Below, in pieces: positions 1-46,662 of a stretch of DNA of 56,059 nt. Where the stretch lies: contig JAHLTZ010000071.1 in assembly GCA_025786725.1 (NCBI GenBank), forward strand, positions 1 to 56,059, given 5' to 3'. The number at the start of each line of letters is the position of its first letter. Position 1 is the first letter of the stretch. Source of the stretch: Syncephalis fuscata S228 (taxonomy: Eukaryota; Fungi; Zoopagomycota). Under the pieces are notes generated by a model. It ran no database searches and was not told the origin of the DNA. It saw only the letters and a program-made list of their open reading frames with translations. The translations under genes were made by a program, and so were the position numbers.

Positions 1-738
1 GCGTGCGATATGTAGTTTTAGTCGTTTGTATTCTTTCCTTTCTCTTGCGATTATTTCTCGTTTGTCCTTTTTTTGCCTAACTGCGCTTCATTCGTTGTAC
101 GACAGTTACTTTCTATACTCTATGCACTGCTGTATAGTGTATTGCTTGTACTGTCATCTTTATTAATGTTTTTGAATTTAGTATTAGTAAAGTTGGACCA
201 TGCAATAGCTTTATATAAGTTGTTGTTTGTCCGTGCAAACAGTTAATTAGAAAAGTGTCTATTATGATTATTGGCCATTACAACAAGTATGTAGTTAACA
301 ATTAGTCATATTAAATAAATAAAAAGTGTTGGAAATACAAAATATTACTAACGTTAATTAAATAATAATTTTATTACTTTGTTGCTTTTTGCTATTATTA
401 TTAATTCATTACAATTGATTAAATAAAACTGTTGGATATACAAATACTATTAATGCTAATTAGCAATGTTGTTGATTTATTGCTTTTACCACTATTATTA
501 ATTCATTACAATTGATTAAACAATAGATATGGCAGCTAATTACCTCTGCTGTTCTATATATACAATCTTATCTAAAACATGCTGTGAAATACTATATAGT
601 TATTTATTACCTCCGATTATCGGTTACACGACCGCGCTATAGAATATTAATTCGTAAGGGACAACTTATACCCACGCACCCACCGCTTTCTTTTATTTGT
701 CTGCTTATAGTTATTGTTTATTCTACATTCAACTAACT

Positions 739-2748
739 ATGCGTCCAGGAGTTTCTTATTCGAATGTGATAGCCAACTATATTAATGGCCAGGAAGTACC
801 ACCACTAGACGGCGAATACATTGATAGTTTTGAGCCGGCTACAGGTTTGGTAAGAAATACTAAAGTGAGAAATGCAATTGCGTATATTAATATTAACACT
901 ATTGCAGCCATATCTCCAAGTGCCCAACTCTTCTGAGGCCGACGTCGAACTAGCAGTTAAAGCAGCGAGTGCCGCTTTTCCCGCCTGGTCTCGTACATCG
1001 CCTATTGAGCGTGCGCGACTACTTGACCGTTTAGCGGACCTGCTAGAAGCAAATCTAGATAAATTCGTGGCTGCAGAGTCGCGCGACCAAGGTAAACCAG
1101 AAAGCTTGGCAAGACTTGTTGATATCCCACGGTCTGTTCGTAATTTCCGCTATTTTGCCGATGAATGTCGTAGTAGCTGGTCACAAGACGAGGCACGTCG
1201 TCTCCCCCCTGCCAATGGCAATCCCGGCCTGTTAAGCTATACACAACGCTGGCCTATTGGTGTGGCTGCTTTAATTAGCCCATGGAACTTGTAAGAAATT
1301 AATACTTTTTACGTAAATAGTTGGCTAAATGTAATATAGACCACTTTATTTACTAACGTGGAAGATTGCACCGTGCATTGCTTGTAAGTCTACAGCAACA
1401 CTAGCAATAATCAATTAATGTTTGCTCTAGCTGGATGTACATGCGTATGTAAACCAAGTGAAATAACTAGCATGACGGCCAGTAGTAAGTATATTACAAT
1501 AACGATATTCAATAACATGCTTTAACTAGTATGGCAGTGTTATGTTCGTTGATTAAAGAAGCCGGTATTCCAGATGGCGTTGTAAATATGGTATTTGGCA
1601 CAGGCAAGTAGAATCAATGACAATAATTTATTTAATTAATTGTATATCTGCAGGCCCCAAGGCTGGCAATGCACTAGTTACTCATCCACGCGTTCCACTT
1701 GTTTCATTCACGGGCAGTATGTAGCATGAGTATAGAAATAGCATAATGCTAATAGACAATTTATGAATAGGCACCGTTACAGGTCAACACATTACACGAG
1801 AAAGTGCATCGTTTTGTAAAAAATTATCACTTGAATTGGGTAAGAGAGCTTATGAACTATCCAATTAATCACTAATAACAATTTATTAAAGGTGGTAAAA
1901 ATGCCAATATTATATTTGATGACTGCGACTTTGAGTCGGCGTTATCAACAACGGTACGCTCGTCTTTTAGTAACCAAGGAGAAATCTGTCTATGCGGATC
2001 GCGTATTTTTATTTCAAAGAGGCATTTATGATCGCTTTTTAACCGGTCTAATTGAACGTGCAAAGGCATTAACGGTGGGCGATCCAGTTGAAGCAAGCTC
2101 ACAGCTTGGTGCATTGGTTAGCAAAGAGCATATGGACAAAGTGTTATACTACATTCAACTAGCACGTGAAGAAGGAGGCATTATTCATTGTGGCGGTGAA
2201 CGATCAAATATCGATGTATGTGAAGCACAGATGGTTGGTTTGTGCAGCCCACGATTATTACAAAGTGAGTCTATCACTCAGTTAATTAAAGTAAAATATA
2301 ATAATGTCTATTTAGTGTATCGCCCAAGGGCCGTGTGATGCAAGAAGAAATATTTGGACCGGTAAATACAACTAAATGGATTTGGATAATCACGGTTATT
2401 AGGATGTTGACCATAGAATTAGGTAGTAACAGTAACACCATTCGACACCGAAGATGAAGCTATCGAATTAGCAAATGATAATGCTTACGGATTATCGGCT
2501 TCATTATGGACAGAGAATGGACGGCGTCAACGTCGAGTAGCAGAGTCTCTACAAGTTGGTACCGTGTGGGTAAATACATGGATGGCAAGAGACCTTCATT
2601 TACCTTTTGGTGGATCCAAGCAATCAGGGTAGGTGGTTAATATGAGTTAATACATGTACTAACTGATAGCAATAGTATTGGAAGAGAGGGTGGAAAATAC
2701 AGCCTCGAGTTTTACACTGAAATCAAAGCTATAAGCTTAGCAGATTAG
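739..2748 (+). CDS. Aldehyde dehydrogenase, ALDH8A1/2-aminomuconic semialdehyde dehydrogenase-like, multi-exon; this copy has +1 (~2012) and -1 (~2222) indels
   Basis: Exons give NYING..FEPATG, ESRDQGKP..VDIPR, ISPWNLPL, FTGST, ELGGKN, NQGEICLCG (catalytic Cys), EEIFGP, PFGGSKQSG. Short GT-AG introns. Indels seen against the right-arm copy. Confidence 0.9.
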
Positions 2749-2905
2749 ATCTCATCTATGAATAATAAAGCTATCCATTGATTGTTCAATGTTGTGCAGG
2801 ATTAATTAAAATACTAGTCAAGTTGGATGATCAATAATTAGTTTTAATACTAAAGAATTTAGCGTGTTTTTATTGTAATGCGTTTTAATAATAGCGTTAA
2901 AACAT

Positions 2906-4084
2906 TTACAGTTGATTGTAAAGTAATTTGTTGGCTGATCCATTGCCAAGTCTGGATAGAACATTGGGCGTGGCATTATCAACGAGTGCTTGATAAAGCT
3001 GATTAATACTATTGAAGTTGCGGGCAGACAAATAAAGAGCTGCAACTCCTGCAACATGTGGTGCAGACATAGATGTACCCGACATAGTATCTGTGCCACC
3101 GCCAGGCTTAAGCGAAACAATATCGGTACCAGGAGCGTATAGGCGAGTGCATGAGCCGTAGTTGGAAAAGTCGGATTCACGATCTCTTGAATCACTTGAG
3201 GCCACTGTAAACGCACCAGATGCACTGGCTGGTGATTCGCGACAGGCATTGACATGATCATTGCCAGCTGCAACAATAACAGCAATGCCAGCTCTTGCCG
3301 CCGCATTAACAGCATCGTTTAAGGCACGCGACTTTGTGCCGCCAAGAGATAGGTTCATGACGGCCTTGTTACGTTTGCTCATACGAGTAGCATATTGGAT
3401 AGCGCCAATAATACCGGCATCGGCACCAGAGCCGCTTTTGTCAAAGACTTTGAGACCTATAATAGCTGCTTTCTTGGCAACACCATACGTGCTGGACCCA
3501 ATGGTGCCGGCCACATGTGTGCCATGACCATCTAGATCAGCATTAGGCTCGTAGCGAATAAAGTTTTTCTGTTGGGAGGCTCGACCACCAAAATCGGGAT
3601 GTTTTGTATCTATGCCACCATCAATTACCCAAACGGTAATACCTTCACCTGCGGTGTCAGGATAGTTGTACGCTGGACTTCCACTGCGTTGCCGGCTAGA
3701 GATACGTGAAAGTCCCCAGCTAGGCGCGTTAGACTGTTGACCCATAGTGTGCATAATTGTTTGCGGCTCAATATACTCGACACGCTCATCGTTTTGCAAA
3801 CGTTCAACCTCTTCCTCCGTCAATTTACCGGCAAATCCTTCAAAACCGCCCACATTGTACATGTGTTCAATTTGATCACTACCATCAAGTAGGCTGCGAC
3901 TTTGGGCAACAAAATGATTGGCCTGGAATCCAGAACGTAGTTTTACAATGTAGCCATTATTGATTTGATCCAACAATTCCGATGTAACATTCTCTGATCT
4001 TCTTACATGACCGTTTGATATGGCACCGTTAACTGCTGCTGTAGAATGTAGAATTATTGAGGCTATTAGCAAAATGGACTTCAT
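2906..4084 (-). CDS. Secreted subtilisin-like serine protease (S8A proteinase K type, I9 propeptide), paralog B
   Basis: Signal peptide, YIVKL prodomain, catalytic VIDGG / GHGTH / AAGN / GTSM; intronless 392 aa. Confidence 0.96.
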   Translation of the reverse strand: MKSILLIASIILHSTAAVNGAISNGHVRRSENVTSELLDQINNGYIVKLRSGFQANHFVAQSRSLLDGSDQIEHMYNVGGFEGFAGKLTEEEVERLQNDERVEYIEPQTIMHTMGQQSNAPSWGLSRISSRQRSGSPAYNYPDTAGEGITVWVIDGGIDTKHPDFGGRASQQKNFIRYEPNADLDGHGTHVAGTIGSSTYGVAKKAAIIGLKVFDKSGSGADAGIIGAIQYATRMSKRNKAVMNLSLGGTKSRALNDAVNAAARAGIAVIVAAGNDHVNACRESPASASGAFTVASSDSRDRESDFSNYGSCTRLYAPGTDIVSLKPGGGTDTMSGTSMSAPHVAGVAALYLSARNFNSINQLYQALVDNATPNVLSRLGNGSANKLLYNQL

Positions 4085-5227
4085 ACTGAATATTAAATAA
4101 TAGTGCGTTGTTCGTAAAGTATGTTGAATAATGTGCGTGTGTTTGGATTTGTTATTAAATGATGTGCTTATGATGGAGTTTGTTGTCGAATATAATGATA
4201 ATTGCCAATTAAAGCGTTCTATTTATTGTAAATTTTAAACATTCGGATCTTGCGTAATATATCCGTTCAATTACTGGTTTACTCTATTTCTCAGTTAATG
4301 TGCGTATAAGTTTCCCAATGTGTCGACAATATTACTATTGTTAGTATACATCGATCTAGGCCTTAAACGTTTATGATGTACACGCCTTGATGTTAATTCA
4401 CACATCTGCTGTTTGTAATGTCATTCAATATACTAAATATAAAGTGTCCTTGTGTTGTAAAACCTAATACGCTAAAGGTACTTATTATTTTGTCATTGGA
4501 CCATCGCTAAGGAGCTAGTATCACGCCACCTTGGAAATATACAAAAGGGTAAATAGCAAATATGGAATGGCCAAACCAGGCTATAGCGTGCATCGATCAT
4601 TTACCATAATTATAGTAACAATTTAATCATCGCCATTTTACAAGTATAATTACAATCGTGATGTTAGATATTAGCGAATAAATGTATATTGTATTAAATG
4701 TTTGCCAGTGCGACGGTTGTCAACAATTCATTATTGACTGTACAACACAAATCATGTTGATGGGCCTATTTTTCGCCTTGTTTACTGTTTCGCCAGTTCT
4801 ATACTATGTACGCAGCAAGTTAAGTCGTCATTGAGCAAATATTTGTCTAATTCAATATACTTTCGGATGTTAAATAAGCCGCTACTTGGATATTTTACAG
4901 TATAATACTAATAACACGTTATGTGTTATAATAGGACACAAGTTGGTTAATTCATACGACTGTACCGTATAGAACAATACTGTTTTATAGCAATATTGTA
5001 CAGCTTTATATTTATGCTAATATATTATTTATGCAACAATAGCACACTTTATTATACCCAGCGCAAATACACATTTAACTAAAAATATTTACATGTTGTT
5101 TTTATGTAAACAAAATATCACTGTATATTAAATGATTTAAATATGTAGCCATGTATTTGCAAATAATTTAATTTATTAGTTGCAGCATATATGTTTGACC
5201 ATTTGTAATCTTTAAGCGCTAATCCAA

Positions 5228-6406
5228 TTATGGCTGATTATATACTAGTTTGTTAGGTGTGCCCTGACTTACACCAGATACAACATTTGGCGTAGCATTG
5301 TTGACAAGAGCACTGTAAAGTTCATCAACGTTGCTATAGCTACGAGCAGACAAATAAAGTGCCGCGACACCAGCAACATGTGGTGAAGACATAGATGTGC
5401 CCGACATGCTGGTAGTGCCGCCATTGGGTGCCAAAGAACGAATGCCAGAACCAGGGGCGTATAAACGAGCACACGGTCCGTAGTTGGAAAACGATGATTG
5501 GCGGTCATTTCTGTCGCTAGATGCAACCGCAAATGCGCGAGATGAACCAGCTGGCGACTCACGGCAAGCATTGGCGTGATCATTACCAGCAGCAACAATA
5601 ACAGCAACGCCAGCGTTTGCGGCCGCACTAACAGCATCATCCAATGCGCGTGATTTGCTTCCACCAAGCGACATGTTAATGACCGTCTTGCCACGACGGG
5701 CCGCACGAGTAACGTACTGAACAGCAGCAACAATATCACTTATGGCACCGCTACCTTTTCGATTCAAAACCTTAAGACCATATATCTTTGCCCTTTTAGC
5801 GACACCATAGGTATTGGATCCAATAGTTCCGGCAACGTGAGTACCATGGCCCGCTAGATCGGCATTGGCCTCACCGCGCACAAAGCTTTTGACTTGTTGG
5901 GCTCGTCCACCAAATTCACGATGTCCCGCGTCTACGCCTGTATCAATTACCCAAACGTCAATGCCTTCACCTGCAGAATCAGGATATGTATAAATTTGAC
6001 TGTTGCCATTTCGTCGGCTAGAAATACGTGAAAGCCCCCAGCTAGGCACGTTAGACTGTTGGCCCATAGTGTGCATAATTGTTTGCGGCTCAATATACTC
6101 GACACGCTCATCGTTTTGCAAACGTTCAACTTCTTTCTCCGTCAATTTACCGGCAAATCCTTCAAATCCACCTGCGTTGTATGTATGTTCGATTTGATCA
6201 TTATCACCAACTAGGCTGCGGCTTTGGGCGATAAAACTATTGACTTGAACTCCAGGACGCAATTTAACAATGTAGCCATTATTGACTTGATCCAGCAGCT
6301 CCGATGTAGCATTAGTAGTTGCTTGGAAGTTTTCACCATCAACGACACCGTTAACTGCGGTAGTAGAAAGTAAAATTGCAAAAAATATCAATAAAGTGCA
6401 CTTCAT
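5228..6406 (-). CDS. Secreted subtilisin-like serine protease (S8A proteinase K type), paralog A
   Basis: Signal peptide, I9 prodomain, VIDTG / GHGTH / AAGN / GTSM; 392 aa. Confidence 0.96.
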   Translation of the reverse strand: MKCTLLIFFAILLSTTAVNGVVDGENFQATTNATSELLDQVNNGYIVKLRPGVQVNSFIAQSRSLVGDNDQIEHTYNAGGFEGFAGKLTEKEVERLQNDERVEYIEPQTIMHTMGQQSNVPSWGLSRISSRRNGNSQIYTYPDSAGEGIDVWVIDTGVDAGHREFGGRAQQVKSFVRGEANADLAGHGTHVAGTIGSNTYGVAKRAKIYGLKVLNRKGSGAISDIVAAVQYVTRAARRGKTVINMSLGGSKSRALDDAVSAAANAGVAVIVAAGNDHANACRESPAGSSRAFAVASSDRNDRQSSFSNYGPCARLYAPGSGIRSLAPNGGTTSMSGTSMSSPHVAGVAALYLSARSYSNVDELYSALVNNATPNVVSGVSQGTPNKLVYNQP

Positions 6407-8499
6407 GGTGATAAGCGAAACAATTCGTTATAGTAAAAAAAATTGTGGTAATGGTTGGTTGATTTATGAATAGATGTGTTGATGCTGATTGAAGTTGTTG
6501 CAAATCTGCCATGCTATTTATTGTATAGATCAAAGTAAGAGCAACATATGTACAAGGTTATTGTTTTGCATTAAATTCATGCTATTTCATTGAATAGATA
6601 CTGTACAAACCATTGATACATTGCAACATCGATGCTATTCAAGTTATGTTACATTAAGTCCAAAACACGTTTGATGTACACGCCTTACTAGTAATTTGCG
6701 TATCTCTCTACTTAGCGCTTTTTCAATAAACAATCAACCTAGACTTAATACTGGAAATCTGACAAAAACATGTTATTTACTACCTAGAGGGTACTTATCA
6801 TAACATGTTTAGGTGTAACAACCAAGCAATTATGGTATCACACCACCTTGGAAAACTAGTAAACAATACACGTGTTAGATACCAGGTGATTTATAGTACA
6901 ACCGTAACTGAAGTACGACCAGCTACATAATGATTATTGATTTAATTGACTAGAAGTTATTAATTGCTATTTGTTTTTGTAATTCTAACCAAGAAGCTAT
7001 CTAAACACAATAAACTGTCGGTTATGCCTTTTTTACCAGTTTCTAATATGCATACATATGTCGTGTTAGTTTAATTTGAATAGCCTTGTAAAGTCATACC
7101 TTGTGTTTCAGCCCAAACTTAAAGAATAAAGTGCGTTGTTGCTTCGAACCTTTTGCGTGCATCAGCTACCCGGGCACTGTACTACGTGACTCTTGTTTCT
7201 TAACCTCCCTCTTTCTTGTTTTCAGTAAATTTCATTTGTTTTTTGTTAACAATGAATACAAGCTACCTTGCTAACTTTTGTCACTTGTTTGTAAATTATC
7301 TAGTTAATAAATAAACACCCCATTTCAGTAACAGCGATGCGCAATCTGGATAGATAATTTAGAAAATAAGAAGCCTTTAATATTATTTACAGAGCGTAAC
7401 GTTTTTAAGTACTGATTGAATTGTTATCCTGTTGTTAGGGAAACATTAATTGTCATTTTTTCTGCTATTGCAGTACACAAAAGTTCAGCTACATTATAAT
7501 ATTTAATTGTCACTAGTATGATGTTATGTATAGCATGCAATATCTACATGTAGCAATATATTAATAACAAATAAATACTATTAACATCATTGTTTATTTA
7601 TTATTTAAACATATTTCACCTATACTATAGTACCAATAACCAATATAACATTTAGATGAGCTCAGTAATAATAATAACAATTTTTCTTCAATTTTATATA
7701 GATATACATATTATTTAATTAAAAACATTTGCTTTTAGTTTACATATCTCATTGTGGCATTTCAATAACTTTGTACTACAACCAATGTATATGACTACAC
7801 TAGCATTGCTATAATGGCGTAAATTTAATGATATTGCTGCAATAGCATTAAATAATAAAATAAATTTACTTTTTAGTTTCTATGTTTAGTTGGTTACTTA
7901 ATAACAATTAAAACAGCAATTTGTAAAAGGGCAACACACACACACACACATGAGCTAGGAAAAGAGAAAAGTGGGCAAATATAGGTAGATGACCTTACGA
8001 ATTATAAGATTGCTACGCAAACATTTAGACAGTAAAAATAAATAATAAGTTAATTAGATGATAAAACTGGTCACACTTGTATGTATGTTATAACTCTCTC
8101 AAAACGTTTAAGACAAGTTCAAGAATGTTACTATAAATATACAAAAAAATAAACGTTTCATTATAAGTTTGTGTACAAATTATATAGTTTATATAGCTTT
8201 AAAGCAGTATAATGTTTAAATACGCTGTTTAAACTAATAGTTGGATTTTTAGTAAAATTGAAAACCTAATAAAGATAAGGGAATATTCGTCAATTAATAG
8301 TACAAAATGAGTAATTAAGCAGTATATTGCTACTTGCCATGTAATAATATAACTACTATTTAGGTTAATAAATAATTAATGGTTGTATTAGAACAAGAAT
8401 TGCCTTATTAATAGGTACTTTTAGTAATGTACATTAGAAATTACATTGCTGTGGTATAAAATAACGTGTAAAAAATGTAAATTTGATTACAATCGTAAA

Positions 8500-10018
8500 A
8501 TAATTTTATGTAAAATGAAGCAAATTGTACGATATTTCGCACAAGTATGCGTATAACATGTAAGTAGCTATTGGCAAAATATACCGCTATTGTATTGTGT
8601 GATGGTGTAGTACTTATGATAATACGCTAATAAATGTGTAAAAATAACAGTTTTTTGCCAATTATGGCTCGTATAAACAAAATACAGCAAAATGATTGCC
8701 GGATTCGAGTTCTCCATGCCTAGTTATACAGATTGGCATAAGAAATAGAACATTGATTTTTGCAACAAAAGTTAGTCAAAAATGTAATTTACGTATTTGT
8801 AATATATCTAATAAATTGTTGCTAAAATACGTATAACTTAATGTATAATAAAGCAAATTGTATGATATTTTGCACAAGTATGCATATAATATGTAAGTAG
8901 CTATTGGCAAAGTATACCGCTATTGTGTTGTGTGATGGTGTAGTATTTATAATAATACGCTAATAAATGTGTAAAAATAGCAGTTTTTTACGGATTATGG
9001 CTTGTATAAGTAAACTACAGCAAAATGATTGCCGGATTCGAGTTCTCCATACTTAAATAATTAGATTAGCATAAGAAATAGAACATTAATTTTTGCAGCA
9101 AAAGCTAGTCAAAAATGCAATTTATGCGTAAATAGTTAACAGTGTTTTATATTGTATGTAAATGTATGGCATAAATTGTTAATTTACATGTAAATATTTA
9201 TTGAAAAAATGATAAAAATTTATGATTTTGGAAAATAAATAGTAAAAATATATTTAGTTCAAGGAAGACTTAAGTTCTCTAAAGTACTAAGGCAATCGTA
9301 ATAGCAATTTAGTATACAGAAATACTGATGTAAATTAACAATTTATGCCATACATTTACATACAATATAAAACACTGTCAACTATTTACACATAAATTGC
9401 ATTTTTGGCTAACTTTTGTTGCAAAAATTAATGTTTTATTTCTTATGCTAATCTAATTATTTAAGTATGGAGAACTCGAATCCGGCAATCATTTTGCTGT
9501 AGTTTACTTATACAAGCCATAATCCGTAAAAAACTGCTATTTTTACACATTTATTAGCGTATTATTATAAATACTACACCATCACACAACACAATAGCGG
9601 TATACTTTGCCAATAGTTACTTACATATTATACGCATACTTGTGCGAAATATCAGACAATTTGCTTTATTATACATTAAGTTATACGTATTTTAGCAACA
9701 ATTTATTAGATATATTACAAATACGTAAATTACATTTTTGACTAACTTTTGCTGCAAAAATTAATGTTTTATTTCTTATGCTAATCTAATTATCTAAGTA
9801 TGGAGAACTCGAACCCGGCAATCATTTTTCTGTATTTTGTTTATACGAGTCATAATTGGCAAAAAAACTGTTATTTTTGTACATTTATTAGCGTATTATC
9901 ATAAGTACTACACCATCACACAATACAATAGCGGTATATTTTGCCAATAGCTACTTACATGTTATACGCATACTTGTGCAAAATATCATACAATTTGCTT
10001 CATTTTACATAAAATTAT
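8500..10018. mobile_element. Foldback-type element: ~690-bp inverted arms, each of ~2 tandem 333-bp units, around a 138-bp core
   Basis: Arms 8500-9189 and 9328-10018 are reverse complements. Unit starts aagcaaattgta at 8518 and 8851. No ORF. Transposon identity is inferred. Confidence 0.75.
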
Positions 10019-11532
10019 AAATAATCTTAGTAACGGTTTATTAACTAAACTATCATTATTGTTTTTATTACCTTTTAGCATTTAATTGCACTAAAATAGC
10101 TTTTATAACGCTTCTGTATATTGGCATAGTATCGGAACAATAATTTCAAAGTGTAAACTGATGTTTTATTGGTCTTTTAGTATAGCATAAATAAGATATT
10201 TTGTTGTTAGCATGGCTATTAGAAATAGAATATTACACCTACAATGATAGTATTGTTATTATTTCGATATTAGTATCATATTGTTATGATGAAATGACTA
10301 ATGAATGTACCATGTAATCAAATGATTTATTAAGCTCGGATGTGATCAGTCGCAAAAATAATACATATATTAAATACTAGCACCAATTAATAGTAATAAA
10401 TCACTATCACAAGGATATGGCGAGTAGCTATTTGTTAATTGCGAACATGTGAGCAGACATATAAATTGACATGTTGTGGTAATGATAAAATAATATAAAG
10501 CATATAAATTTGAATATTAGTTATTTTTATTATAACTGAAAGCTTTATTCAATAGAAATAGAAATAATTAATTCTTAGTCTTATCACATTTATACTTAAT
10601 GTCATACAAGTTACCTAATCTACTATAGTTAAACTGTAATAATTAAGCACCAATAAAGAACAAGTTTATTAGCAAAGTAATATTGACCGATTAACATATT
10701 TTATTCTAAGCGTTAAAGTTTGGTCAATTTCATAAACTGTCGTTGTAAAATAATGCTGGGATAAATGTTGCTTGGTCATCTAGACTGCGATTTATTTAAC
10801 CAAAATTGTAGTAATATGTTGCAGTTAAACATTATTGTTGGTAAGAATGGGTGCGGATGAGTATGTAAGTATAATAGAAAAAAGTGAGCAAGCGGTTATA
10901 TTACCACTTGCCCATATGGCAGCATAATTACTATTTGGGTTGCTAAATAATTGCATTAGGACTACACATCGCTGTTTTTATAAAAGCGTATAGACTAACA
11001 CGTAAAAGCTAGCGCAACATGTTAACAGTGGCGAGTGTACTATTGCTCATCACTGTTGTGTATGACAATACGTAAAACTACCACACAATGTGTTAACAGT
11101 GATGTGTACCACAGTACTCACAATTGTGGCAGCTATTGCTTCACTTTCTTTTTTTCCTATGGCCTTACGAACATTCAGACAATTAGACATATAAAATAAT
11201 AAAGAAACAAAAAAATATCTTGTTGAAAAATAACGAAAAGAAGTAATAGAACAATCATATCGATCGTGAATAGTAAATGATCATATTATGACGACTATTA
11301 CACCGTAAATAAATACCTTAGTGGTATGTAATAATCATCATAGCACTACTGGGCAAAAATACTAGGAAGGGATGTGTAAGATAGTATCATGTATTAATAT
11401 ACCCATCACATTAATGTCGTAATAATGTGTAAAATTGGACACATTCGTGACAGTGTTGTCACACCTGTAAGTAATTTGTCAGGCAAAATTTCAAAGTCCG
11501 ACACTGACAAAAAAGTAATTTTAGCAAAAATA

Positions 11533-11614
11533 TGATCAGGGTGGGGTTCGAACCCACGCCTCCGAAGAGATTACGGCCTAAACGTAACGCCTTAGACCAC
11601 TCGGCCACCTGACC
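11533..11614 (-). tRNA. tRNA-Leu (anticodon UAG)
   Basis: Reverse strand GGTCAGG-TG-GCCGAGTGGTCTAAGGC-G-TTACG-TT[TAG]GC-CGTAA-long variable arm-GTGGG-TTCGAAC-CCCAC-CCTGATC-A folds as a class II cloverleaf. Confidence 0.96.
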
Positions 11615-12347
11615 ACCGATAAAGTTTTAAACAGTAAATACTATATATTTCTATTTTTAAATTTGCAAAAATTTATTTGTTTTTAGGTATTGGTTGAACA
11701 TAAAATACGGTTATGCATTGTATTTGTGCAATTAAATTACTGGAGTATAAATAGCATATAATGCAGTATTCATTTATATTGTTTTTACTATTTTTTATTA
11801 TCGTATTATTATGATTACCATATTAAATAGCTAATTGATTCAGATTTAATTAATTTTACTATAACAGCTACTTTAAATTATTATTTCTATAAGTGCACAA
11901 ACTATATATAATTGCGTATTTATTAGTAATAAAATATACTTGCAAAAGAAGTATTTATAATTATATGAAGTGAAAAAACTAGGCAAACAATTTAAACTAT
12001 CATATTTAATGTATTTAATTAATATGTAGGTTATAGATATAAATAATGCACTATTGTATTGATATATCTACTATTTGGCTGCACACTTATTCATTTAATA
12101 CAACTATAACTACGCTAACTATTTGATTAATTATTTTAATATAAGCATTACCACTTTTATTAATAAATATAGAATAAAAAGCAACTTGCTTACGAATATA
12201 CCAATATGTTCGATATTAAAGCATTAACTTTTTGAAAACAATTGAAGTTAACTATTATAAACAATATAAATGAACAATATTTTTTAATTAGAACATTCCA
12301 GCATACATTTTATTCTGTTTGTGTATATATGCTTATTCATTGCCTGT

Positions 12348-13384: not shown

Positions 13385-13854
13385 TGAAACAAGAAAAAAA
13401 TGGCATTATTTTCAGTTTTCAATTAATATCAAACTCAATACCTTGTAACAATAGTATGTGACAGCGCTGAGTTTTATTAATGATCAAAGAGCTACTTCCC
13501 TTTGAGTCCCTAGCTTCAAACTGGACAAAAAGATCCGTAACTCGAATAGTAAACCGTCAATCAGTTTTTACTACTGAGAAGTGGTTTGTTGTAGTGCCAC
13601 ATTAACTCCAATTAAATTAATCAGTGTCAATTAATCAGCACAATTTTCAATATCCAACATCAGTGTTAATAAATGTTAAATAGTATTTCATGTTACTTAC
13701 AATAAAATACTACATTTGCCTCATCAATGGTCGGCAAAGCATTTGCACTTACTAAGTTGATACGAAGAATGCCTAAGGCAATGATGAACATTAGAAATGG
13801 TAGTCGCCCTACCTTTTTGTCACCATAAATGAGTATCTTACATTGCAAATATAC

Positions 13855-21421: not shown

Positions 21422-21445
21422 GTGTGTGTGTGTGTGTGTGTGTGT
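21422..21445. repeat. (GT)n microsatellite, mirrored as (AC)n at ~28906-28929
   Basis: Direct reading. Confidence 0.9.
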
Positions 21446-35637: not shown

Positions 35638-36510
35638 TATTTGCTCGTCAAATTTGACATAAATGATTTTCAACTGATAAAAAGTAAAAGGGAAAGATAT
35701 TTTAAGACTGTATCTAAAAATCCCATGCTATTTAACGAACAACAAGTCGGCTAATATTTTTTATTGAGCAGTCCATGAAATACACAAATATAAATGGCAG
35801 TACAGATCAATTTAGAGATAAATTCACGTGTGTTAGTTAAATGGGTCCGCACAAGGGTCAAAACATAGCCAGTTTTCCAATAATGGTATGATAACATGTG
35901 TAAGCTATAAATAGTAAATAATATCTAAAGATAATCAAATGTAATACTAATATCGTTATTATAATAAAAAATGTATTAGTAAAACTCATCTCTCTTTCTC
36001 TAGAGCTTTATTATTTGAAGCAAGGTATAGCGATACGAATTTGAACGACAGTGTTAACAGCTAAAAAGTGATTTAAATGCTATTTTTTGGTGTTAATATC
36101 GACTTTCTACTTTAAGCAATTTTCCACGATTTTTTGAATACATAAAAGCATGTACTAATGCATATTCACTATACGGGAATAAAAATAAGATTACATATGT
36201 TAAGAATAATGTGCTATTTATGTGTATCGGGTGTTTTATTAATATTAATGATTGTGTATATTAAACATAAACAACATCATTGATAAATTGTATAATTATG
36301 CAAGATGGCTATTATATACTATAAAGCTCTATAGTCATTGAAGACGAAATTGGAAGTGTTATTGGTTGTCGTTATGTTATACAATTAATAGTGAATATCA
36401 ATTTACACTAGCTGTGGCCGTATTAAAAGCTATTTTAGTGCAATTAGGTGCTAAAAGGTAATAAAAACAATAATGATAGTTTAGTTAATAAAACGTTACT
36501 AAAATTATTT

Positions 36511-37969
36511 ATAATTTTATGTAAAATGAAGCAAATTGTATGATATTTTGCACAAGTATGCGTATAACATGTAAGTAGCTATTGGCAAAGTATACCGCTA
36601 TTGTGTTGTGTGATGGTGTAGTACTTATGATAATACGCTAATAAATGTGTAAAAATAACAGTTTTTTGCCAATTATGGCTCGTATAAACAAAATACAGCA
36701 AAATGATTGCCGGATTCGAGTTCTCCATGCCTAGTTATACAGATTGGCATAAGAAATAGAACATTGATTTTTGCAACAAAAGTTAGTCAAAAATGTAATT
36801 TACGTATTTGTAATATATCTAATAAATTGTTGCTAAAATACGTATAACTTAATGTATAATAAAGCAAATTGTATGATATTTTGCACAAGTATGCATATAA
36901 TATGTAAGTAGCCATTGGCAAAGTATACCGCTATTGTGTTGTGTGATGGTGTAGTATTTATAATAATACGCTAATAAATGTGTAAAAATAGCAGTTTTTT
37001 ACGGATTATGGCTTGTATAAGTAAACTACAGCAAAATGATTGCCGGATTCGAGTTCTCCATACTTAAATAATTAGATTAGCATAAGAAATAGAACATTGA
37101 TTTTTGCAACAAAAGTTAGCCAAAAATGCAATTTACATGTAAATATTTATTGAAAAAATGATAAAAATTTATGATTTTGAAAAATAAATAGTAAAAATAT
37201 ATTTAGTTCAAGGAAGACTTAAAGTTCTCTAAAGTACTAAGGCAATCGTAATAGCAATTTAGTATACAGAAATACTGATGTAAATTAACAATTTATGCCA
37301 TACATTTACATACAATATAAAACACTGTCAACTATTTACGCATAAATTGCATTTTTGGCTAACTTTTGTTGCAAAAATTAATGTTTTATTTCTTATGCTA
37401 ATCTAATTATTTAAGTATGGAGAACTCGAATCCGGCAATCATTTTGCTGTATTTTGTTTATACGAGCCATAATTGGCAAAAAAACTGCTATTTTTGTACA
37501 TTTATTAGCGTATTATCATAAGTACTACACCATCACACAACACAATAGCGGTATACTTTGCCAATAGCTACTTACATATTATATGCATACTTGTGCGAAA
37601 TATCATACAATTTGCTTTATTATACGTTAAGTTATACGTATTTTTAGCAACAATTTATTAGATATATTACAAATACGTAAATTACATTTTTGACTAGCTT
37701 TTGCTGCAAAAATCAATGTTCTATTTCTTATGCTAATCTAATTATCTAAGTATGGAGAACTCGAATCCGGCAATCATTTTGCTGTAGTTTACTTATACAA
37801 GCCATAATCCGTAAAAAACTGCTATTTTTACACATTTATTAGCGTATTATCATAAGTACTACACCATCACACAATACAATAGCGGTATATTTTGCCAATA
37901 GCTACTTACATGTTATACGCATACTTGTGCGAAATATCGTACAATTTGCTTCATTTTACATAAAATTAT
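36511..37969. mobile_element. Second copy of the 333-bp-unit foldback element; ~60-bp deletion at the inner end of its left arm
   Basis: Same units and same core as 8500-10018. Confidence 0.75.
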
Positions 37970-40062
37970 TTTACGATTGTAATCAAATTTACATTTTTTA
38001 CACGTTATTTTATACCACAGCAATGTAATTTCTAATGTACATTACTAAAAGTACCTATTAATAAGGCAATTCTCGTTCTAATACAACCATTAATTATTTA
38101 TTAACCTAAATAGTAGTTATATTATTACATGGCAAGTAGCAATATACTGCTTAATTACTCATTTTGTACTATTAATTGACGAATATTCCCTTATCTTTAT
38201 TAGGTTTTCAATTTTACTAAAAATCCAACTATTAGTTTAAACAGCGTATTTAAACATTATACTGCTTTAAAGCTATATAAACTATATAATTTGTACACAA
38301 ACTTATAATGAAACGTTTATTTTTTGTATATTTATAGTAACATTCTTGAACTTGTCTTAAACGTTTTGAGAGAGTTATAACATACATACAAGTGTGACCA
38401 GTTTTATCATCTAATTAACTTATTATTTATTTTTACTGTCTAAATGTTTGCGTAGCAATCTTATAATTCGTAAGGTCATCTACCTATATTTGCCCACTTT
38501 TCTCTTTTCCTAGCTCATGTGTGTGTGTGTGTGTTGCCCTTTTACAAATTGCTGTTTTAATTGTTATTAAGTAACCAACTAAACATAGAAACTAAAAAGT
38601 AAATTTATTTTATTATTTAATGCTATTGCAGCAATATCATTAAATTTACGCCATTATAGCAATGCTAGTGTAGTCATATACATTGGTTGTAGTACAAAGT
38701 TATTGAAATGCCACAATGAGATATGTAAACTAAAAGCAAATGTTTTTAATTAAATAATATGTATATCTATATAAAATTGAAGAAAAATTGTTATTATTAT
38801 TACTGAGCTCATCTAAATGTTATATTGGTTATTGGTACTATAGTATAGGTGAAATATGTTTAAATAATAAATAAACAATGATGTTAATAGTATTTATTTG
38901 TTATTAATATATTGCTACATTTAGATATTGCATGCTATACATAACATCATACTAGTGACAATTAAATATTATAATGTAGCTGAACTTTTGTGTACTGCAA
39001 TAGCAGAAAAAATGACAATTAATGTTTCCCTAACAACAGGATAACAATTCAATCAGTACTTAAAAACGTTACGCTCTGTAAATAATATTAAAGGCTTCTT
39101 ATTTTCTAAATTATCTATCCAGATTGCGCATCGCTGTTACTGAAATGGGGTGTTTATTTATTAACTAGATAATTTACAAACAAGTGACAAAAGTTAGCAA
39201 GGTAGCTTGTATTCATTGTTAACAAAAAACAAATGAAATTTACTGAAAACAAGAAAGAGGGAGGTTAAGAAACAAGAGTCACGTAGTACAGTGCCCGGGT
39301 AGCTGATGCACGCAAAAGGTTCGAAGCAACAACGCACTTTATTCTTTAAGTTTGGGCTGAAACACGAGGTATGACTTTACAAGGCTATTCAAATTAAACT
39401 AACACGACATATGTATGCATATTAGAAACTGGTAAAAAAGGCATAACCGACAGTTTATTGTGTTTAGATAGCTTCTTGGTTAGAATTACAAAAACAAATA
39501 GCAATTAATAACTTCTAGTCAATTAAATCAATAATCATTATGTAGCTGGTCGTACTTCAGTTACGGTTGTACTATAAATCACCTGGTATCTAACACGTGT
39601 ATTGTTTACTAGTTTTCCAAGGTGGTGTGATACCATAATTGCTTGGTTGTTACACCTAAACATGTTATGATAAGTACCCTCTAGGTAGTAAATAACATGT
39701 TTTTGTCAGATTTCCAGTATTAAGTCTAGGTTGATTGTTTATTGAAAAAGCGCTAAGTAGAGAGATACGCAAATTACTAGTAAGGCGTGTACATCAAACG
39801 TGTTTTGGACTTAATGTAACATAACTTGAATAGCATCGATGTTGCAATGTATCAATGGTTTGTACAGTATCTATTCAATGAAATAGCATGAATTTAATGC
39901 AAAACAATAACCTTGTACATATGTTGCTCTTACTTTGATCTATACAATAAATAGCATGGCAGATTTGCAACAACTTCAATCAGCATCAACACATCTATTC
40001 ATGAATCAACCAACCATTACCACAATTTTTTTTTACTATAACGAATTGTTTCGCTTATCACC

Positions 40063-41241
40063 ATGAAGTGCACTTTATTGATATTTTTTGCAATCTTACT
40101 TTCTACTACCGCAGTTAACGGTGTCGTTGATGATGAAAACTTCCAAGCAACTACTAATGCTACATCGGAGCTGCTGGATCAAGTCAATAATGGCTACATT
40201 GTTAAATTGCGTCCTGGAGTTCAAGTCAATAGTTTTATCGCCCAAAGCCGCAGCCTAGTTGGTGATAATGATCAAATCGAACATACATACAACGCAGGTG
40301 GATTTGAAGGATTTGCCGGTAAATTGACGGAGGAAGAGGTTGAACGTTTGCAAAACGATGAGCGTGTCGAGTATATTGAGCCGCAAACAATTATGCACAC
40401 TATGGGCCAACAGTCTAACGTGCCTAGCTGGGGGCTTTCACGTATTTCTAGCCGACGAAATGGCAACAGTCAAATTTATACATATCCTGATTCTGCAGGT
40501 GAAGGCATTGACGTTTGGGTAATTGATACAGGCGTAGACGCGGGACATCGTGAATTTGGTGGACGAGCCCAACAAGTCAAAAGCTTTGTGCGCGGTGAGG
40601 CCAATGCCGATCTAGCGGGCCATGGTACTCACGTTGCCGGAACTATTGGATCCAATACCTATGGTGTCGCTAAAAGGGCAAAGATATATGGTCTTAAGGT
40701 TTTGAATCGAAAAGGTAGCGGTGCCATAAGTGATATTGTTGCTGCTGTTCAGTACGTTACTCGTGCGGCCCGTCGTGGCAAGACGGTCATTAACATGTCG
40801 CTTGGTGGAAGCAAATCACGCGCATTGGATGATGCTGTTAGTGCGGCCGCAAACGCTGGCGTTGCTGTTATTGTTGCTGCTGGTAATGATCACGCCAATG
40901 CTTGCCGTGAGTCGCCAGCTGGTTCATCTCGCGCATTTGCGGTTGCATCTAGCGACAGAAATGACCGCCAATCATCGTTTTCCAACTACGGACCGTGTGC
41001 TCGTTTATACGCCCCTGGTTCTGGCATTCGTTCTTTGGCACCCAATGGCGGCACTACCAGCATGTCGGGCACATCTATGTCTTCACCACATGTTGCTGGT
41101 GTCGCGGCACTTTATTTGTCTGCTCGTAGCTATAGCAACGTTGATGAACTTTACAGTGCTCTTGTCAACAATGCTACGCCAAATGTTGTATCTGGTGTAA
41201 GTCAGGGCACACCTAACAAACTAGTATATAATCAGCCATAA
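40063..41241 (+). CDS. Secreted S8A protease paralog A, right-arm copy
   Basis: Differs from 5228..6406 by two residues (VDG/VDD, TEK/TEE). Confidence 0.96.
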   Translation: MKCTLLIFFAILLSTTAVNGVVDDENFQATTNATSELLDQVNNGYIVKLRPGVQVNSFIAQSRSLVGDNDQIEHTYNAGGFEGFAGKLTEEEVERLQNDERVEYIEPQTIMHTMGQQSNVPSWGLSRISSRRNGNSQIYTYPDSAGEGIDVWVIDTGVDAGHREFGGRAQQVKSFVRGEANADLAGHGTHVAGTIGSNTYGVAKRAKIYGLKVLNRKGSGAISDIVAAVQYVTRAARRGKTVINMSLGGSKSRALDDAVSAAANAGVAVIVAAGNDHANACRESPAGSSRAFAVASSDRNDRQSSFSNYGPCARLYAPGSGIRSLAPNGGTTSMSGTSMSSPHVAGVAALYLSARSYSNVDELYSALVNNATPNVVSGVSQGTPNKLVYNQP

Positions 41242-42384
41242 TTGGATTAGCGCTTAAAGATTACAAATGGTCAAACATATATGCTGCAACTAATAAATTA
41301 AATTATTTGCAAATACATGGCTACATATTTAAATCATTTAATATACAGTGATATTTTGTTTACATAAAAACAACATGTAAATATTTTTAGTTAAATGTGT
41401 ATTTGCGCTGGGTATAATAAAGTGTGCTATTGTTGCATAAATAATATATTAGCATAAATATAAAGCTGTACAATATTGCTATAAAACAGTATTGTTCTAT
41501 ACGGTACAGTCGTATGAATTAACCAACTTGTGTCCTATTATAACACATAACGTGTTATTAGTATTATACTGTAAAATATCCAAGTAGCGGCTTATTTAAC
41601 ATCCGAAAGTATATTGAATTAGACAAATATTTGCTCAATGACGACTTAACTTGCTGCGTACATAGTATAGAACTGGCGAAACAGTAAACAAGGCGAAAAA
41701 TAGGCCCATCAACATGATTTGTGTTGTACAGTCAATAATGAATTGTTGACAACTGTCGCACTGGCAAACATTTAATACAATATACATTTATTCGCTAATA
41801 TCTAACATCACGATTGTAATTATACTTGTAAAATGGCGATGATTAAATTGTTACTATAATTATGGTAAATGATCGATGCACGCTATAGCCTGGTTTGGCC
41901 ATTCCATATTTGCTATTTACCCTTTTGTATATTTCCAAGGTGGCGTGATACTAGCTCCTTAGCGATGGTCCAATGACAAAATAATAAGTACCTTTAGCGT
42001 ATTAGGTTTTACAACACAAGGACACTTTATATTTAGTATATTGAATGACATTACAAACAGCAGATGTGTGAATTAACATCAAGGCGTGTACATCATAAAC
42101 GTTTAAGGCCTAGATCGATGTATACTAACAATAGTAATATTGTCGACACATTGGGAAACTTATACGCACATTAACTGAGAAATAGAGTAAACCAGTAATT
42201 GAACGGATATATTACGCAAGATCCGAATGTTTAAAATTTACAATAAATAGAACGCTTTAATTGGCAATTATCATTATATTCGACAACAAACTCCATCATA
42301 AGCACATCATTTAATAACAAATCCAAACATACGCACATTATTCAACATACTTTACGAACAACGCACTATTATTTAATATTCAGT

Positions 42385-43563
42385 ATGAAGTCCATTTTGC
42401 TAATAGCCTCAATAATTCTACATTCTACAGCAGCAGTTAACGGTGCCATATCAAACGGTCATGTAAGAAGATCAGAGAATGTTACATCGGAATTGTTGGA
42501 TCAAATCAATAATGGCTACATTGTAAAACTACGTTCTGGATTCCAGGCCAATCATTTTGTTGCCCAAAGTCGCAGCCTACTTGATGGTAGTGATCAAATT
42601 GAACACATGTACAATGTGGGCGGTTTTGAAGGATTTGCCGGTAAATTGACGGAGGAAGAGGTTGAACGTTTGCAAAACGATGAGCGTGTCGAGTATATTG
42701 AGCCGCAAACAATTATGCACACTATGGGTCAACAGTCTAACGCGCCTAGCTGGGGACTTTCACGTATCTCTAGCCGGCAACGCAGTGGAAGTCCAGCGTA
42801 CAACTATCCTGACACCGCAGGTGAAGGTATTACCGTTTGGGTAATTGATGGTGGCATAGATACAAAACATCCCGATTTTGGTGGTCGAGCCTCCCAACAG
42901 AAAAACTTTATTCGCTACGAGCCTAATGCTGATCTAGATGGTCATGGCACACATGTGGCCGGCACCATTGGGTCCAGCACGTATGGTGTTGCCAAGAAAG
43001 CAGCTATTATAGGTCTCAAAGTCTTTGACAAAAGCGGCTCTGGTGCCGATGCCGGTATTATTGGCGCTATCCAATATGCTACTCGTATGAGCAAACGTAA
43101 CAAGGCCGTCATGAACCTATCTCTTGGCGGCACAAAGTCGCGTGCCTTAAACGATGCTGTTAATGCGGCGGCAAGAGCTGGCATTGCTGTTATTGTTGCA
43201 GCTGGCAATGATCATGTCAATGCCTGTCGCGAATCACCAGCCAGTGCATCTGGTGCGTTTACAGTGGCCTCAAGTGATTCAAGAGATCGTGAATCCGACT
43301 TTTCCAACTACGGCTCATGCACTCGCCTATACGCTCCTGGTACCGATATTGTTTCGCTTAAGCCTGGCGGTGGCACAGATACTATGTCGGGTACATCTAT
43401 GTCTGCACCACATGTTGCAGGAGTTGCAGCTCTTTATTTGTCTGCCCGCAACTTCAATAGTATTAATCAGCTTTATCAAGCACTCGTTGATAATGCCACG
43501 CCCAATGTTCTATCCAGACTTGGCAATGGATCAGCCAACAAATTACTTTACAATCAACTGTAA
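42385..43563 (+). CDS. Secreted S8A protease paralog B, right-arm copy
   Basis: Protein identical to 2906..4084. Confidence 0.96.
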   Translation: MKSILLIASIILHSTAAVNGAISNGHVRRSENVTSELLDQINNGYIVKLRSGFQANHFVAQSRSLLDGSDQIEHMYNVGGFEGFAGKLTEEEVERLQNDERVEYIEPQTIMHTMGQQSNAPSWGLSRISSRQRSGSPAYNYPDTAGEGITVWVIDGGIDTKHPDFGGRASQQKNFIRYEPNADLDGHGTHVAGTIGSSTYGVAKKAAIIGLKVFDKSGSGADAGIIGAIQYATRMSKRNKAVMNLSLGGTKSRALNDAVNAAARAGIAVIVAAGNDHVNACRESPASASGAFTVASSDSRDRESDFSNYGSCTRLYAPGTDIVSLKPGGGTDTMSGTSMSAPHVAGVAALYLSARNFNSINQLYQALVDNATPNVLSRLGNGSANKLLYNQL

Positions 43564-43721
43564 ATGTTTTAACGCTATTATTAAAACGCATTACAATAAA
43601 AACACGCTAAATTCTTTAGTATTAAAACTAATTATTGATCATCCAACTTGACTAGTATTTCTAATTAATCCTGCACAACATTGAACAATCAATGGATAGC
43701 TTTATTATTCATAGATGAAAT

Positions 43722-45731
43722 CTAATCTGCTAAGCTTATAGCTTTGATTTCAGTGTAAAACTCGAGGCTGTATTTTCCACCCTCTCTTCCAATACTATTG
43801 CTATCAGTTAGTACATGTATTAACTCATATTAACCACCTACCCTGATTGCTTGGATCCACCAAAAGGTAAATGAAGGTCTCTTGCCATCCATGTATTTAC
43901 CCACACGGTACCAACTTGTAGAGACTCTGCTACTCGACGTTGACGCCGTCCATTCTCTGTCCATAATGAAGCCGATAATCCGTAAGCATTATCATTTGCT
44001 AATTCGATAGCTTCATCTTCGGTGTCGAATGGTGTTACTGTTACTACCTAATTCTATGGTCAACATCCTAATAACCGTGATTATCCAAATCCATTTAGTT
44101 GTATTTACCGGTCCAAATATTTCTTCTTGCATCACACGGCCCTTGGGCGATACACTAAATAGACATTATTATATTTTACTTTAATTAACTGAGTGATAGA
44201 CTCACTTTGTAATAATCGTGGGCTGCACAAACCAACCATCTGTGCTTCCACATACATCGATATTTGATCGTTCACCGCCACAATGAATAATGCCTCCTTC
44301 TTCACGTGCTAGTTGAATGTAGTATAACACTTTGTCCATATGCTCTTTGCTAACCAATGCACCAAGCTGTGAGCTTGCTTCAACTGGATCGCCCACCGTT
44401 AATGCCTTTGCACGTTCAATTAGACCGGTTAAAAAGCGATCATAAATGCCTCTTTGAATAAAAATACGCGATCCGCATAGACAGATTTCTCCTTGGTTAC
44501 TAAAAGACGAGCGTACCGTTGTTGATAACGCCGACTCAAAGTCGCAGTCATCAAATATAATATTGGCATTTTTACCACCTTTAATAAATTGTTATTAGTG
44601 ATTAATTGGATAGTTCATAAGCTCTCTTACCCAATTCAAGTGATAATTTTTTACAAAACGATGCACTTTCTCGTGTAATGTGTTGACCTGTAACGGTGCC
44701 TATTCATAAATTGTCTATTAGCATTATGCTATTTCTATACTCATGCTACATACTGCCCGTGAATGAAACAAGTGGAACGCGTGGATGAGTAACTAGTGCA
44801 TTGCCAGCCTTGGGGCCTGCAGATATACAATTAATTAAATAAATTATTGTCATTGATTCTACTTGCCTGTGCCAAATACCATATTTACAACGCCATCTGG
44901 AATACCGGCTTCTTTAATCAACGAACATAACACTGCCATACTAGTTAAAGCATGTTATTGAATATCGTTATTGTAATATACTTACTACTGGCCGTCATGC
45001 TAGTTATTTCACTTGGTTTACATACGCATGTACATCCAGCTAGAGCAAACATTAATTGATTATTGCTAGTGTTGCTGTAGACTTACAAGCAATGCACGGT
45101 GCAATCTTCCACGTTAGTAAATAAAGTGGTCTATATTACATTTAGCCAACTATTTACGTAAAAAGTATTAATTTCTTACAAGTTCCATGGGCTAATTAAA
45201 GCAGCCACACCAATAGGCCAGCGTTGTGTATAGCTTAACAGGCCGGGATTGCCATTGGCAGGGGGGAGACGACGTGCCTCGTCTTGTGACCAGCTACTAC
45301 GACATTCATCGGCAAAATAGCGGAAATTACGAACAGACCGTGGGATATCAACAAGTCTTGCCAAGCTTTCTGGTTTACCTTGGTCGCGCGACTCTGCAGC
45401 CACGAATTTATCTAGATTTGCTTCTAGCAGGTCCGCTAAACGGTCAAGTAGTCGCGCACGCTCAATAGGCGATGTACGAGACCAGGCGGGAAAAGCGGCA
45501 CTCGCTGCTTTAACTGCTAGTTCGACGTCGGCCTCAGAAGAGTTGGGCACTTGGAGATATGGCTGCAATAGTGTTAATATTAATATACGCAATTGCATTT
45601 CTCACTTTAGTATTTCTTACCAAACCTGTAGCCGGCTCAAAACTATCAATGTATTCGCCGTCTAGTGGTGGTACTTCCTGGCCATTAATATAGTTGGCTA
45701 TCACATTCGAATAAGAAACTCCTGGACGCAT
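43722..45731 (-). CDS. ALDH8A1-like aldehyde dehydrogenase, right-arm copy (intact at both indel sites)
   Basis: Mirror of 739..2748; reads SRIFIQRG and IDVCGSTDGWFVQPT in frame. Confidence 0.92.
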
Positions 45732-46662
45732 AGTTAGTTGAATGTAGAATAAACAATAACTATAAGCAGACAAATAAAAGAAAGCGGTGGGTGCGTGGGT
45801 ATAAGTTGTCCCTTACGAATTAATATTCTATAGCGCGGTCGTGTAACCGATAATCGGAGGTAATAAATAACTATATAGTATTTCACAGCATGTTTTAGAT
45901 AAGATTGTATATATAGAACAGCAGAGGTAATTAGCTGCCATATCTATTGTTTAATCAATTGTAATGAATTAATAATAGTGGTAAAAGCAATAAATCAACA
46001 ACATTGCTAATTAGCATTAATAGTATTTGTATATCCAACAGTTTTATTTAATCAATTGTAATGAATTAATAATAATAGCAAAAAGCAACAAAGTAATAAA
46101 ATTATTATTTAATTAACGTTAGTAATATTTTGTATTTCCAACACTTTTTATTTATTTAATATGACTAATTGTTAACTACATACTTGTTGTAATGGCCAAT
46201 AATCATAATAGACACTTTTCTAATTAACTGTTTGCACGGACAAACAACAACTTATATAAAGCTATTGCATGGTCCAACTTTACTAATACTAAATTCAAAA
46301 ACATTAATAAAGATGACAGTACAAGCAATACACTATACAGCAGTGCATAGAGTATAGAAAGTAACTGTCGTACAACGAATGAAGCGCAGTTAGGCAAAAA
46401 AAGGACAAACGAGAAATAATCGCAAGAGAAAGGAAAGAATACAAACGACTAAAACTACATATCGCACGCTGTGTAGACAGACAAAAGCTCACAAAGTCTG
46501 TGCACATAGTCATACAAATGCATTGCTGTTTTGTCGTTCGTGTAATTGAACGTAGACATAATAACGATAATAATCGATTATTATAAAGCAAGCGCTCATT
46601 TGAATTGACTGCGCTAATAACTATCTCGATGTCGCACTTATTAACGTAGTACACAGGGCAAT

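Follow-up and report, generated by a model that had tools for sequence, protein, structure and literature searches.

A nested 10-kb inverted repeat in Syncephalis fuscata: most likely one flank assembled twice around a candidate inversion bounded by fold-back transposons

In the zoopagomycotan fungus Syncephalis fuscata S228, contig JAHLTZ010000071.1 (C341 below; assembly GCA_025786725.1, 29.36 Mb in 371 contigs) is laid out as a nest of inverted repeats, which raises the question of whether such a structure exists in the chromosome and continues to invert there. The window analysed is the entire contig, 56,059 bp. Two outer arms (1-10105 and 36424-46469), which carry an aldehyde dehydrogenase (ALDH) gene and two subtilase genes, enclose 26,318 bp, referred to here as the middle, within which a second inverted repeat of 3,020 bp surrounds a hexokinase gene. 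A preliminary description of this DNA, whose coordinates for both the outer and the inner repeat were reproduced when the contig was aligned against itself, proposed a flip-flop locus that exists as several isomers. Comparison with the neighbouring contigs suggests a different answer at the outer level: the 10-kb 'inverted repeat' is most likely one single-copy flank that was traversed twice by the assembler. A probability of about one half is given to the reading in which two haplotypes carry the 26.3-kb middle in opposite orientations and the assembler passed through arm, middle and arm in succession. The two flank junctions would then lie on different molecules, with recombination between fold-back transposon copies as the inferred cause. 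All structures were read from assembled contigs, and the evidence on the arms is of the contig level, not of single molecules.

Both ends of C341 lead to the same neighbour. The final base of contig C90 (503,866 bp) matches window position 46470 and window base 1 matches position 46469; the two contigs tile exactly, without overlap or gap. At its other end, the last 9,590 bp of C341 correspond to the last 9.6 kb of C90 at 99.3% identity. The first 246 bp of this stretch are identical, and past them the two versions are separated by 23 substitutions (17 transitions), 19 one-base insertions/deletions (indels) and runs of 16 and 10 bp, with a divergence of 0.24%. The exact tiling, taken together with the 9.6-kb match at the other end, indicates that C341 is attached by either end to one and the same end of C90, with no second flank. 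Two different unique sequences outside the two arms were accordingly not found, the right arm running back into C90 sequence; extension to the left of position 1, which the preliminary description had recommended, revealed that the arm edge is a contig end rather than a repeat boundary and that homology goes on into C90. Just inside the 9.6-kb stretch C90 is single-copy, and the ALDH gene and the two subtilase genes of the arms occur in the assembly on C341 only, twice (the single-copy checks, like the junction search reported below, were run across the assembly with queries shorter than 10 kb). This is the geometry of a hairpin contig, in which both ends lead to one C90 end and the divergence of the arms (0.13%) compares with 0.15-0.24% between versions. 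The features of the arms and flank are as follows.

1..8143, no strand: unique part of the left 'arm', with ALDH, subtilase A and subtilase B; begins at contig base 1, abutting the last C90 base
about 872-2338 (exons), plus strand: ALDH of the left arm, gene call
2906-4084, minus strand: subtilase A of the left arm, gene call
5228-6406, minus strand: subtilase B of the left arm, gene call
8144..8499, no strand: 356-bp segment beside the fold-back core, near-identical between the two arms
37970..46469, no strand: right 'arm', consisting of the 356-bp segment and then mirror copies of subtilase B, subtilase A and ALDH
46470..56059, no strand: right 'flank', a second version of the last 9.6 kb of C90, up to the final base of C341
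46663-48174, minus strand: BTB-domain gene in the right flank, gene call

The arms had been described as differing by about a dozen single-nucleotide polymorphisms, mostly transitions. This holds for positions 1-8499, where 11 substitutions (10 transitions) and 5 one-base indels were counted and where the outer 2.7 kb contains no substitution at all; beyond that point the arms are not uniform. Their divergence remains at 0.13% as far as about position 8646, and from about 8647, ~147 bp into the core of a fold-back transposon, identity falls stepwise to a divergence of 7-10%. A true inverted repeat is characterized by uniform identity that decays at the repeat edges; no such decay was seen along the arms, and the step lies inside the transposon core instead. 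Differences between the arm versions at 7102, 7547 and 8395 make the flank of each junction distinct right up to the fold-back element. The 356-bp segment that adjoins the core accompanies it in some other copies of the family and shows 72-74% identity elsewhere. The two versions of subtilase B (5228-6406 and 40063-41241) differ at four sites, 6131, 6136, 6336 and 6374, and at three of these the right-arm gene has the base of its tandem paralogue, subtilase A. This suggests a short gene-conversion tract, derived from subtilase A, in one version of subtilase B only, that of the right arm.

The element in which the step occurs is present at both borders of the middle.

8500..10018, plus strand: left fold-back core, 1,519 bp, with a perfect 30-bp terminal inverted repeat and arms of ~720 bp that are 93.7% complementary
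10019..10105, no strand: 87-bp outer terminal repeat of the full element, left copy, inner side; 4 differences from the right copy
36424..36510, no strand: 87-bp terminal repeat, right copy, inner side; 1 difference from the C268 copy
36511..37969, minus strand: right fold-back core, 1,459 bp

It has the features of foldback-type transposons, namely long inverted arms built of subrepeats, a short loop, terminal inverted repeats and many dispersed copies. The fold-back arms of ~720 bp are 89-94% complementary and are each composed of two ~330-bp units that are 88.9% alike; Tandem Repeats Finder reported none of these units, though they are visible in pairwise alignment. The loop of the core measures about 140-190 bp, the predicted single-stranded DNA folding energy of the right core is -632 kcal/mol, and the family has >100 matches in the genome at 70-80% identity.

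The innermost 87 bp of the outer arms had previously been viewed as the edge of a repeat kept homogeneous by recombination. The count of 4 differences was recovered by alignment (the 87-bp repeats of the left and right copies are 4.6% diverged), but the interpretation was not, as these bases are the terminal repeat of the fold-back transposon and are found on both sides of a complete element on another contig, C268 (284,972 bp). The presence of the 87-bp repeat on both sides of the C268 element implies that the similarity at the inner ends of the arms is that of two copies of one transposon family at the borders of the middle. In the C268 element the terminal repeats are perfect at 86 bp on both sides; no clear target-site duplication was found at this copy, and its flanks are AT-rich. 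The DNA just outside the fold-back elements, to the left of the middle (window 10300-10800) as well as on the C268 side (C268:272700-273200), contains further dispersed repeat families, with many copies at about 70-74%, and these neighbouring repeats place the breakpoints in nests of transposons.

The relation between the two cores of C341 is more complex than that of two inverted copies. Aligned in the inverted-repeat frame they show 89.5% identity, and with one of them flipped 92.8%. In the former alignment the right core agrees with the left core over its outermost ~150 bp; its interior (about 550-1350) is for the most part the reverse complement of the left core. The right core is identical in contig C136 and 4% different in C268.

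Further evidence comes from contigs C268 and C136. Alternative ARRANGEMENTS were found in the same assembly, comprising three outer junction types and both orientations of the inner spacer. The assembled outer junctions connect the arm with the left end of the middle, the arm with its right end (two contigs, C341 and C136) and unrelated DNA with its right end (C268). C268 ends in the right part of the middle: its sequence follows the window from 37969 back to 26581 at 99.1% identity and then continues through the 3,020-bp repeat into 196 bp of the spacer; past the complete fold-back element it enters unrelated single-copy DNA, not the arm. C136 (15,237 bp) contains, in order, spacer, repeat, the right part of the middle, the fold-back core and 503 bp of arm. 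The hexokinase spacer of C136 and that of C268 are both inverted relative to C341, and the last 196 bases of C268 align to the left end of the spacer with a score of 189/196, compared with 9 to the other end. Inverted homologous repeats are available at both breakpoint levels: the fold-back elements at 8500-10105 and 36424-37969, and the 3,020-bp repeats at 20751-23770 and 26581-29600.

The element at the junction between the flank and the right end of the middle combines features of the other two junctions. Its outer end and flank are those of the flank/left-end junction, and its inner 87 bp and flank are those of the C268 junction, a pattern that would be expected of a recombinant between two transposon copies. 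The distinct flank version at each junction, together with the identity of the right core in C341 and C136, indicates that both flank junctions are likely real DNA. The matching terminal repeats of the C268 element suggest that it is unrearranged, for which reason the adjacency seen in C268 is probably ancestral.

The small differences among the contigs provide information on how many versions of the locus are present. In the right part of the middle, all variable sites among C341, C136 and C268 are biallelic, and over 9.8 kb of the middle 15 sites (0.15%) separate C341 from C268. The differences are rich in transitions, which argues against random consensus error. The similar divergences obtained from different comparisons (0.13%, 0.15% and 0.24%), the biallelic sites and the conversion tract would fit two haplotypes. 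Three haplotypes were considered and rejected, as every site is biallelic and two haplotypes with a mosaic consensus are enough. In C341 the two copies of the inner repeat show 0 differences over 3,020 bp, and C136 and C268 carry another version of it, with 5 shared sites that differ from C341. At repeat position 2709, G is found in both C341 copies and A in both C136 copies and in C268, from which it appears that spacer orientation goes with the version of the repeat. This association of orientation with allele would fit a fixed difference between two haplotypes better than an ongoing flip-flop.

A series of events can be proposed to account for these observations. The ancestral order would have been C90, flank, fold-back, middle, fold-back and C268. 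In one of two haplotypes (or nuclear types) the middle is presumed to have been inverted by homologous recombination between the fold-back copies at its borders, without the involvement of a dedicated recombinase. Such an inversion would create the junction between the flank and the right end of the middle, the element there taking its outer end from one parent and its inner end from the other. Because the haplotypes differ by only ~0.15% and the reads are shorter than the middle, an assembler without phasing could not choose its exit. The outcome would be a walk through flank, middle and inverted flank, with C268 stopping inside the middle and C136 left as a spare path. The hexokinase cassette would represent a second, nested inversion difference between the same two haplotypes. 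Recombination is likely to have acted on the fold-back elements of 1.5 kb and on the inner repeats of 3 kb. Since each complete gene travels together with its own upstream DNA, no expression switch is to be expected.

Several observations weigh against this reading. A fourth outer junction, linking the unrelated DNA through a fold-back to the left end of the middle, was not found in the assembly. C136 does not follow a single version: its alleles resemble those of C268 to about 30020 and those of C341 from about 31490, which would make it a mosaic, a recombinant or a third version. It also bears 12 private substitutions in three tight clusters (28610-28845, 30249-30284 and 33083-33735), for which a third version of the sequence, conversion of patches from other copies of the repeat and errors in the local consensus are possible sources. 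For the far copy of the repeat, the link between allele and orientation rests on one site, and the perfect 3,020-bp repeat is long enough for an assembler to mis-set the orientation of the spacer. Nor is the right core a clean hybrid, as its positions 151-300 matched none of the cores compared and elsewhere it is 1-3% from the left core or the C268 core.

The middle itself contains the following features, among which the gene calls of the preliminary description hold, as do those for the arms: ALDH, two subtilases, the Sec31/Sec16-like open reading frame (ORF) and the RPL15 exon.

10106..20750, no strand: left part of the middle, single-copy in the assembly
17235-19748, plus strand: Sec31/Sec16-like ORF, gene call
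20751..23770, plus strand: left inner repeat of 3,020 bp, made up of dispersed repeat families
23771..26580, no strand: inner spacer, 2,810 bp, with hexokinase inside
24061-25629, minus strand: intronless hexokinase, 522 aa, with both hexokinase domains
26581..29600, minus strand: right inner repeat, with no difference from the left one in C341
29601..36423, no strand: right part of the middle, present also on C136 and at the end of C268
31965-32546, plus strand: RPL15 exon, gene call
33558-35470, minus strand: third subtilase, with an fn3_5 domain, gene call

Hexokinase is the sole gene between the perfect 3,020-bp inverted repeats, and about 950 bp of its upstream DNA also lies inside the spacer, so that inversion should not part the gene from its promoter. 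The 3,020-bp unit is a composite in which positions 55-1992 and 2091-2937 match different dispersed families elsewhere in the genome. Each copy contains a 187-aa orphan ORF (21874-22437 and 27914-28477) that has no Pfam match. A partial third copy of about 850 bp (98%) is located at window 50576-51431 and also at C90:498939-499786.

An alternative in which the structure of C341 is taken at face value is a true inverted duplication, present in some nuclei at least, in which flank, middle and inverted flank are joined on one molecule. Its arms would be at least 19.7 kb long, consisting of the flank and the last 9.6 kb of C90, and would have originated by recombination or template switching between the two fold-back copies on sister chromatids or homologues; C268 would then represent the unrearranged haplotype. 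C341 is continuous with exactly this structure, both flank junctions look real, each with its own flank version, and the first ~150 bp of the right core are those of the left core, as would be the case in a recombinant. This alternative is nevertheless unlikely. Neither a second flank nor a second junction is assembled, and the right arm merges into C90 sequence. The simplest product would be isodicentric or acentric, would lack the C268 side and is unlikely to stay frequent; the duplication would require a mirror chromosome, itself unstable, or one more junction that is not seen. The agreement between the divergence of the arms and that between haplotypes at this locus would, moreover, be a coincidence.

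It is more doubtful still that the alternative arrangements are purely an artefact of assembly, with only the order C90, flank, middle and C268 and one orientation of the spacer existing in the cells, and all else produced by false repeat overlaps or chimeric molecules. Such an origin would be in keeping with a contig that folds back on its neighbour with exact tiling at a contig end, with the indel-rich, low-quality consensus of the extra contigs and with the ambiguous overlaps that a perfect 3,020-bp repeat would allow within it. It does not readily explain the right core, which is distinct (4% from the C268 core, 7-10% from the left core) and joins unique flank and unique middle in two contigs that differ elsewhere. 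Only about 527 bp beyond unique DNA are identical between the flank junctions, which is short for a false overlap of long reads, and the changes between the flank versions are real, with a bias to transitions and a conversion tract among them.

An active, recurrent flip-flop within one mycelium is given a slim chance. Under this proposal the 26-kb middle, the hexokinase cassette and the interior of the fold-back core would keep inverting by general recombination between the flanking inverted repeats, producing several isomers per haplotype. Part of the original claim stands here, as the assembly carries alternative arrangements at both levels and the core interior is flipped between copies; what is not supported is the role of the 10-kb arms as the inverted repeat driving inversion, given that there is no second flank and that the step in identity lies inside a transposon. 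Three combinations are assembled, namely orientation A with the flank in C341, orientation B with the flank in C136 and orientation B with unrelated DNA in C268, which is one above the limit for two fixed haplotypes unless a contig is mosaic. The identity of the inner repeat copies within a contig is likewise what frequent exchange would maintain. However, spacer orientation tracks the repeat alleles, the single allele switch in C136 is consistent with a mosaic contig, and the outer repeats, only about 90-96% alike, would be a poor substrate for frequent exchange. The inverted segments comprise whole genes with their upstream DNA, and nothing would be switched by inverting them. The contig also contains no recombinase, MAT or HMG gene.

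This last point, already made in the preliminary description, was confirmed by searches for HMG-box and tyrosine-recombinase domains and by the domains of the ORFs. The HMG-box search of the assembly gave 8 matches, all off C341, and the ORFs of the contig are metabolic, protease or housekeeping in character. Tyrosine-recombinase domains were found on other contigs only, the nearest at C90:125599, 378 kb from the C90 end; no recombinase domain was detected in the ORFs of C341, serine recombinases not having been searched for. The tyrosine-recombinase (Phage_integrase) domains lie in open frames of ~985 aa at C34:6043-6534, C201:365965-366456 and C344:44838-45329, and also at C90:125599 and on C312 and C314. 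These frames fall into two sets of identically scoring copies, none of them near the locus, and may belong to Crypton- or DIRS-like mobile elements.

Two further origins were rejected outright: a palindromic read from a missed adapter, which would give a palindrome without a spacer where 26 kb separate the arms here, and a linear plasmid or telomeric hairpin, which does not agree with the housekeeping genes present or with the absence of telomere repeats from both ends of C341.

Data from outside the assembly were also consulted. In one sequencing run (5 Mb, Logan contigs; 5% of sampled words), the window was matched only at the dispersed fold-back repeat, 8612-10018. Exact-product look-ups for independent assemblies with subtilase A and hexokinase gave no match, although records of the genome itself may be excluded from such look-ups. 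Literature searches returned no account of the S. fuscata genome assembly procedure or of its ploidy. According to a published survey, Zoopagomycota are frequently diploid-dominant (PMC9457484).

Two haplotypes, ~0.15% apart and distinguished by nested inversions, seem to be present in the culture, which bears on ploidy in Zoopagomycota. The locus also calls for caution: a nested 10-kb 'inverted repeat' without a second flank is best read as the path of an unphased assembler that crossed a heterozygous inversion and came back. Gene counts are affected, as ALDH and the two subtilases are probably counted twice, and so is any claim of invertible switches in the S. fuscata assembly. In a fungal lineage that has received little study, inversion breakpoints appear to be marked by the fold-back family, with its >100 copies. 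If recurrent flipping were true after all, the locus would be a population of isomers in each haplotype, and fold-back transposons would be genome-wide hinges for inversion in a mycoparasitic, zygomycete-grade fungus.

Among known systems, inversions bounded by transposons bear a close resemblance to the proposed arrangement. Inversion polymorphism through non-allelic homologous recombination between inverted transposons is known from the FB elements of Drosophila and from Ty-bounded inversions in yeast. As in these cases, the breakpoints of the S. fuscata locus lie in two copies of one family in opposite orientation, whole genes are carried, no dedicated recombinase is present and one junction element resembles one copy at its outer end and the other at its inner end. 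The locus differs from them in that only three of the four junctions are assembled, in that the recombinant core is not a clean hybrid and in that the elements themselves are long hairpins with flipping interiors. A second parallel is provided by haplotype fold-back (hairpin) contigs, which arise when long reads of a heterozygous genome are assembled without phasing. C341 shares with them the exact tiling at a contig end, arm differences as small as those of other redundant copies and a leftover contig for the alternative path (C136), although its turn is not a point but extends over a 26-kb segment, for which an inversion, real or apparent, is needed.

The systems that are more commonly associated with reversible inversion are less similar. 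The mating-type flip-flop of Ogataea and Komagataella also has a segment of tens of kb between inverted repeats, for which general homologous recombination makes two orientations possible. C341, in contrast, has no MAT or HMG gene, its orientation appears to be linked to haplotype, and there is no evidence at the locus of a silencing position effect or of induced switching. The isomers of plastid and herpesvirus genomes share with it the nested unique segments between inverted repeats, from which 2^n isomers could arise. In those genomes the inverted repeats border on two different unique regions at defined boundaries, and their depth is double, whereas the outer repeat of this locus has no second flank. 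In the isodicentric chromosomes that derive from human Y-chromosome palindromes, sister-chromatid recombination between inverted repeats would yield the mirror structure of C341. Isodicentric products are unstable and lose the distal chromosome, and the mirror structure of C341 is known from an assembled contig only, not from one molecule. To judge by the ORFs of the contig, in which no recombinase domain was found, the locus is not of the site-specific invertase class represented by Flp/2-micron, Hin/Gin and Crypton-type systems. Most probably, the biology behind the locus is that of an ordinary polymorphism for nested inversions, with repeats as the hinges.

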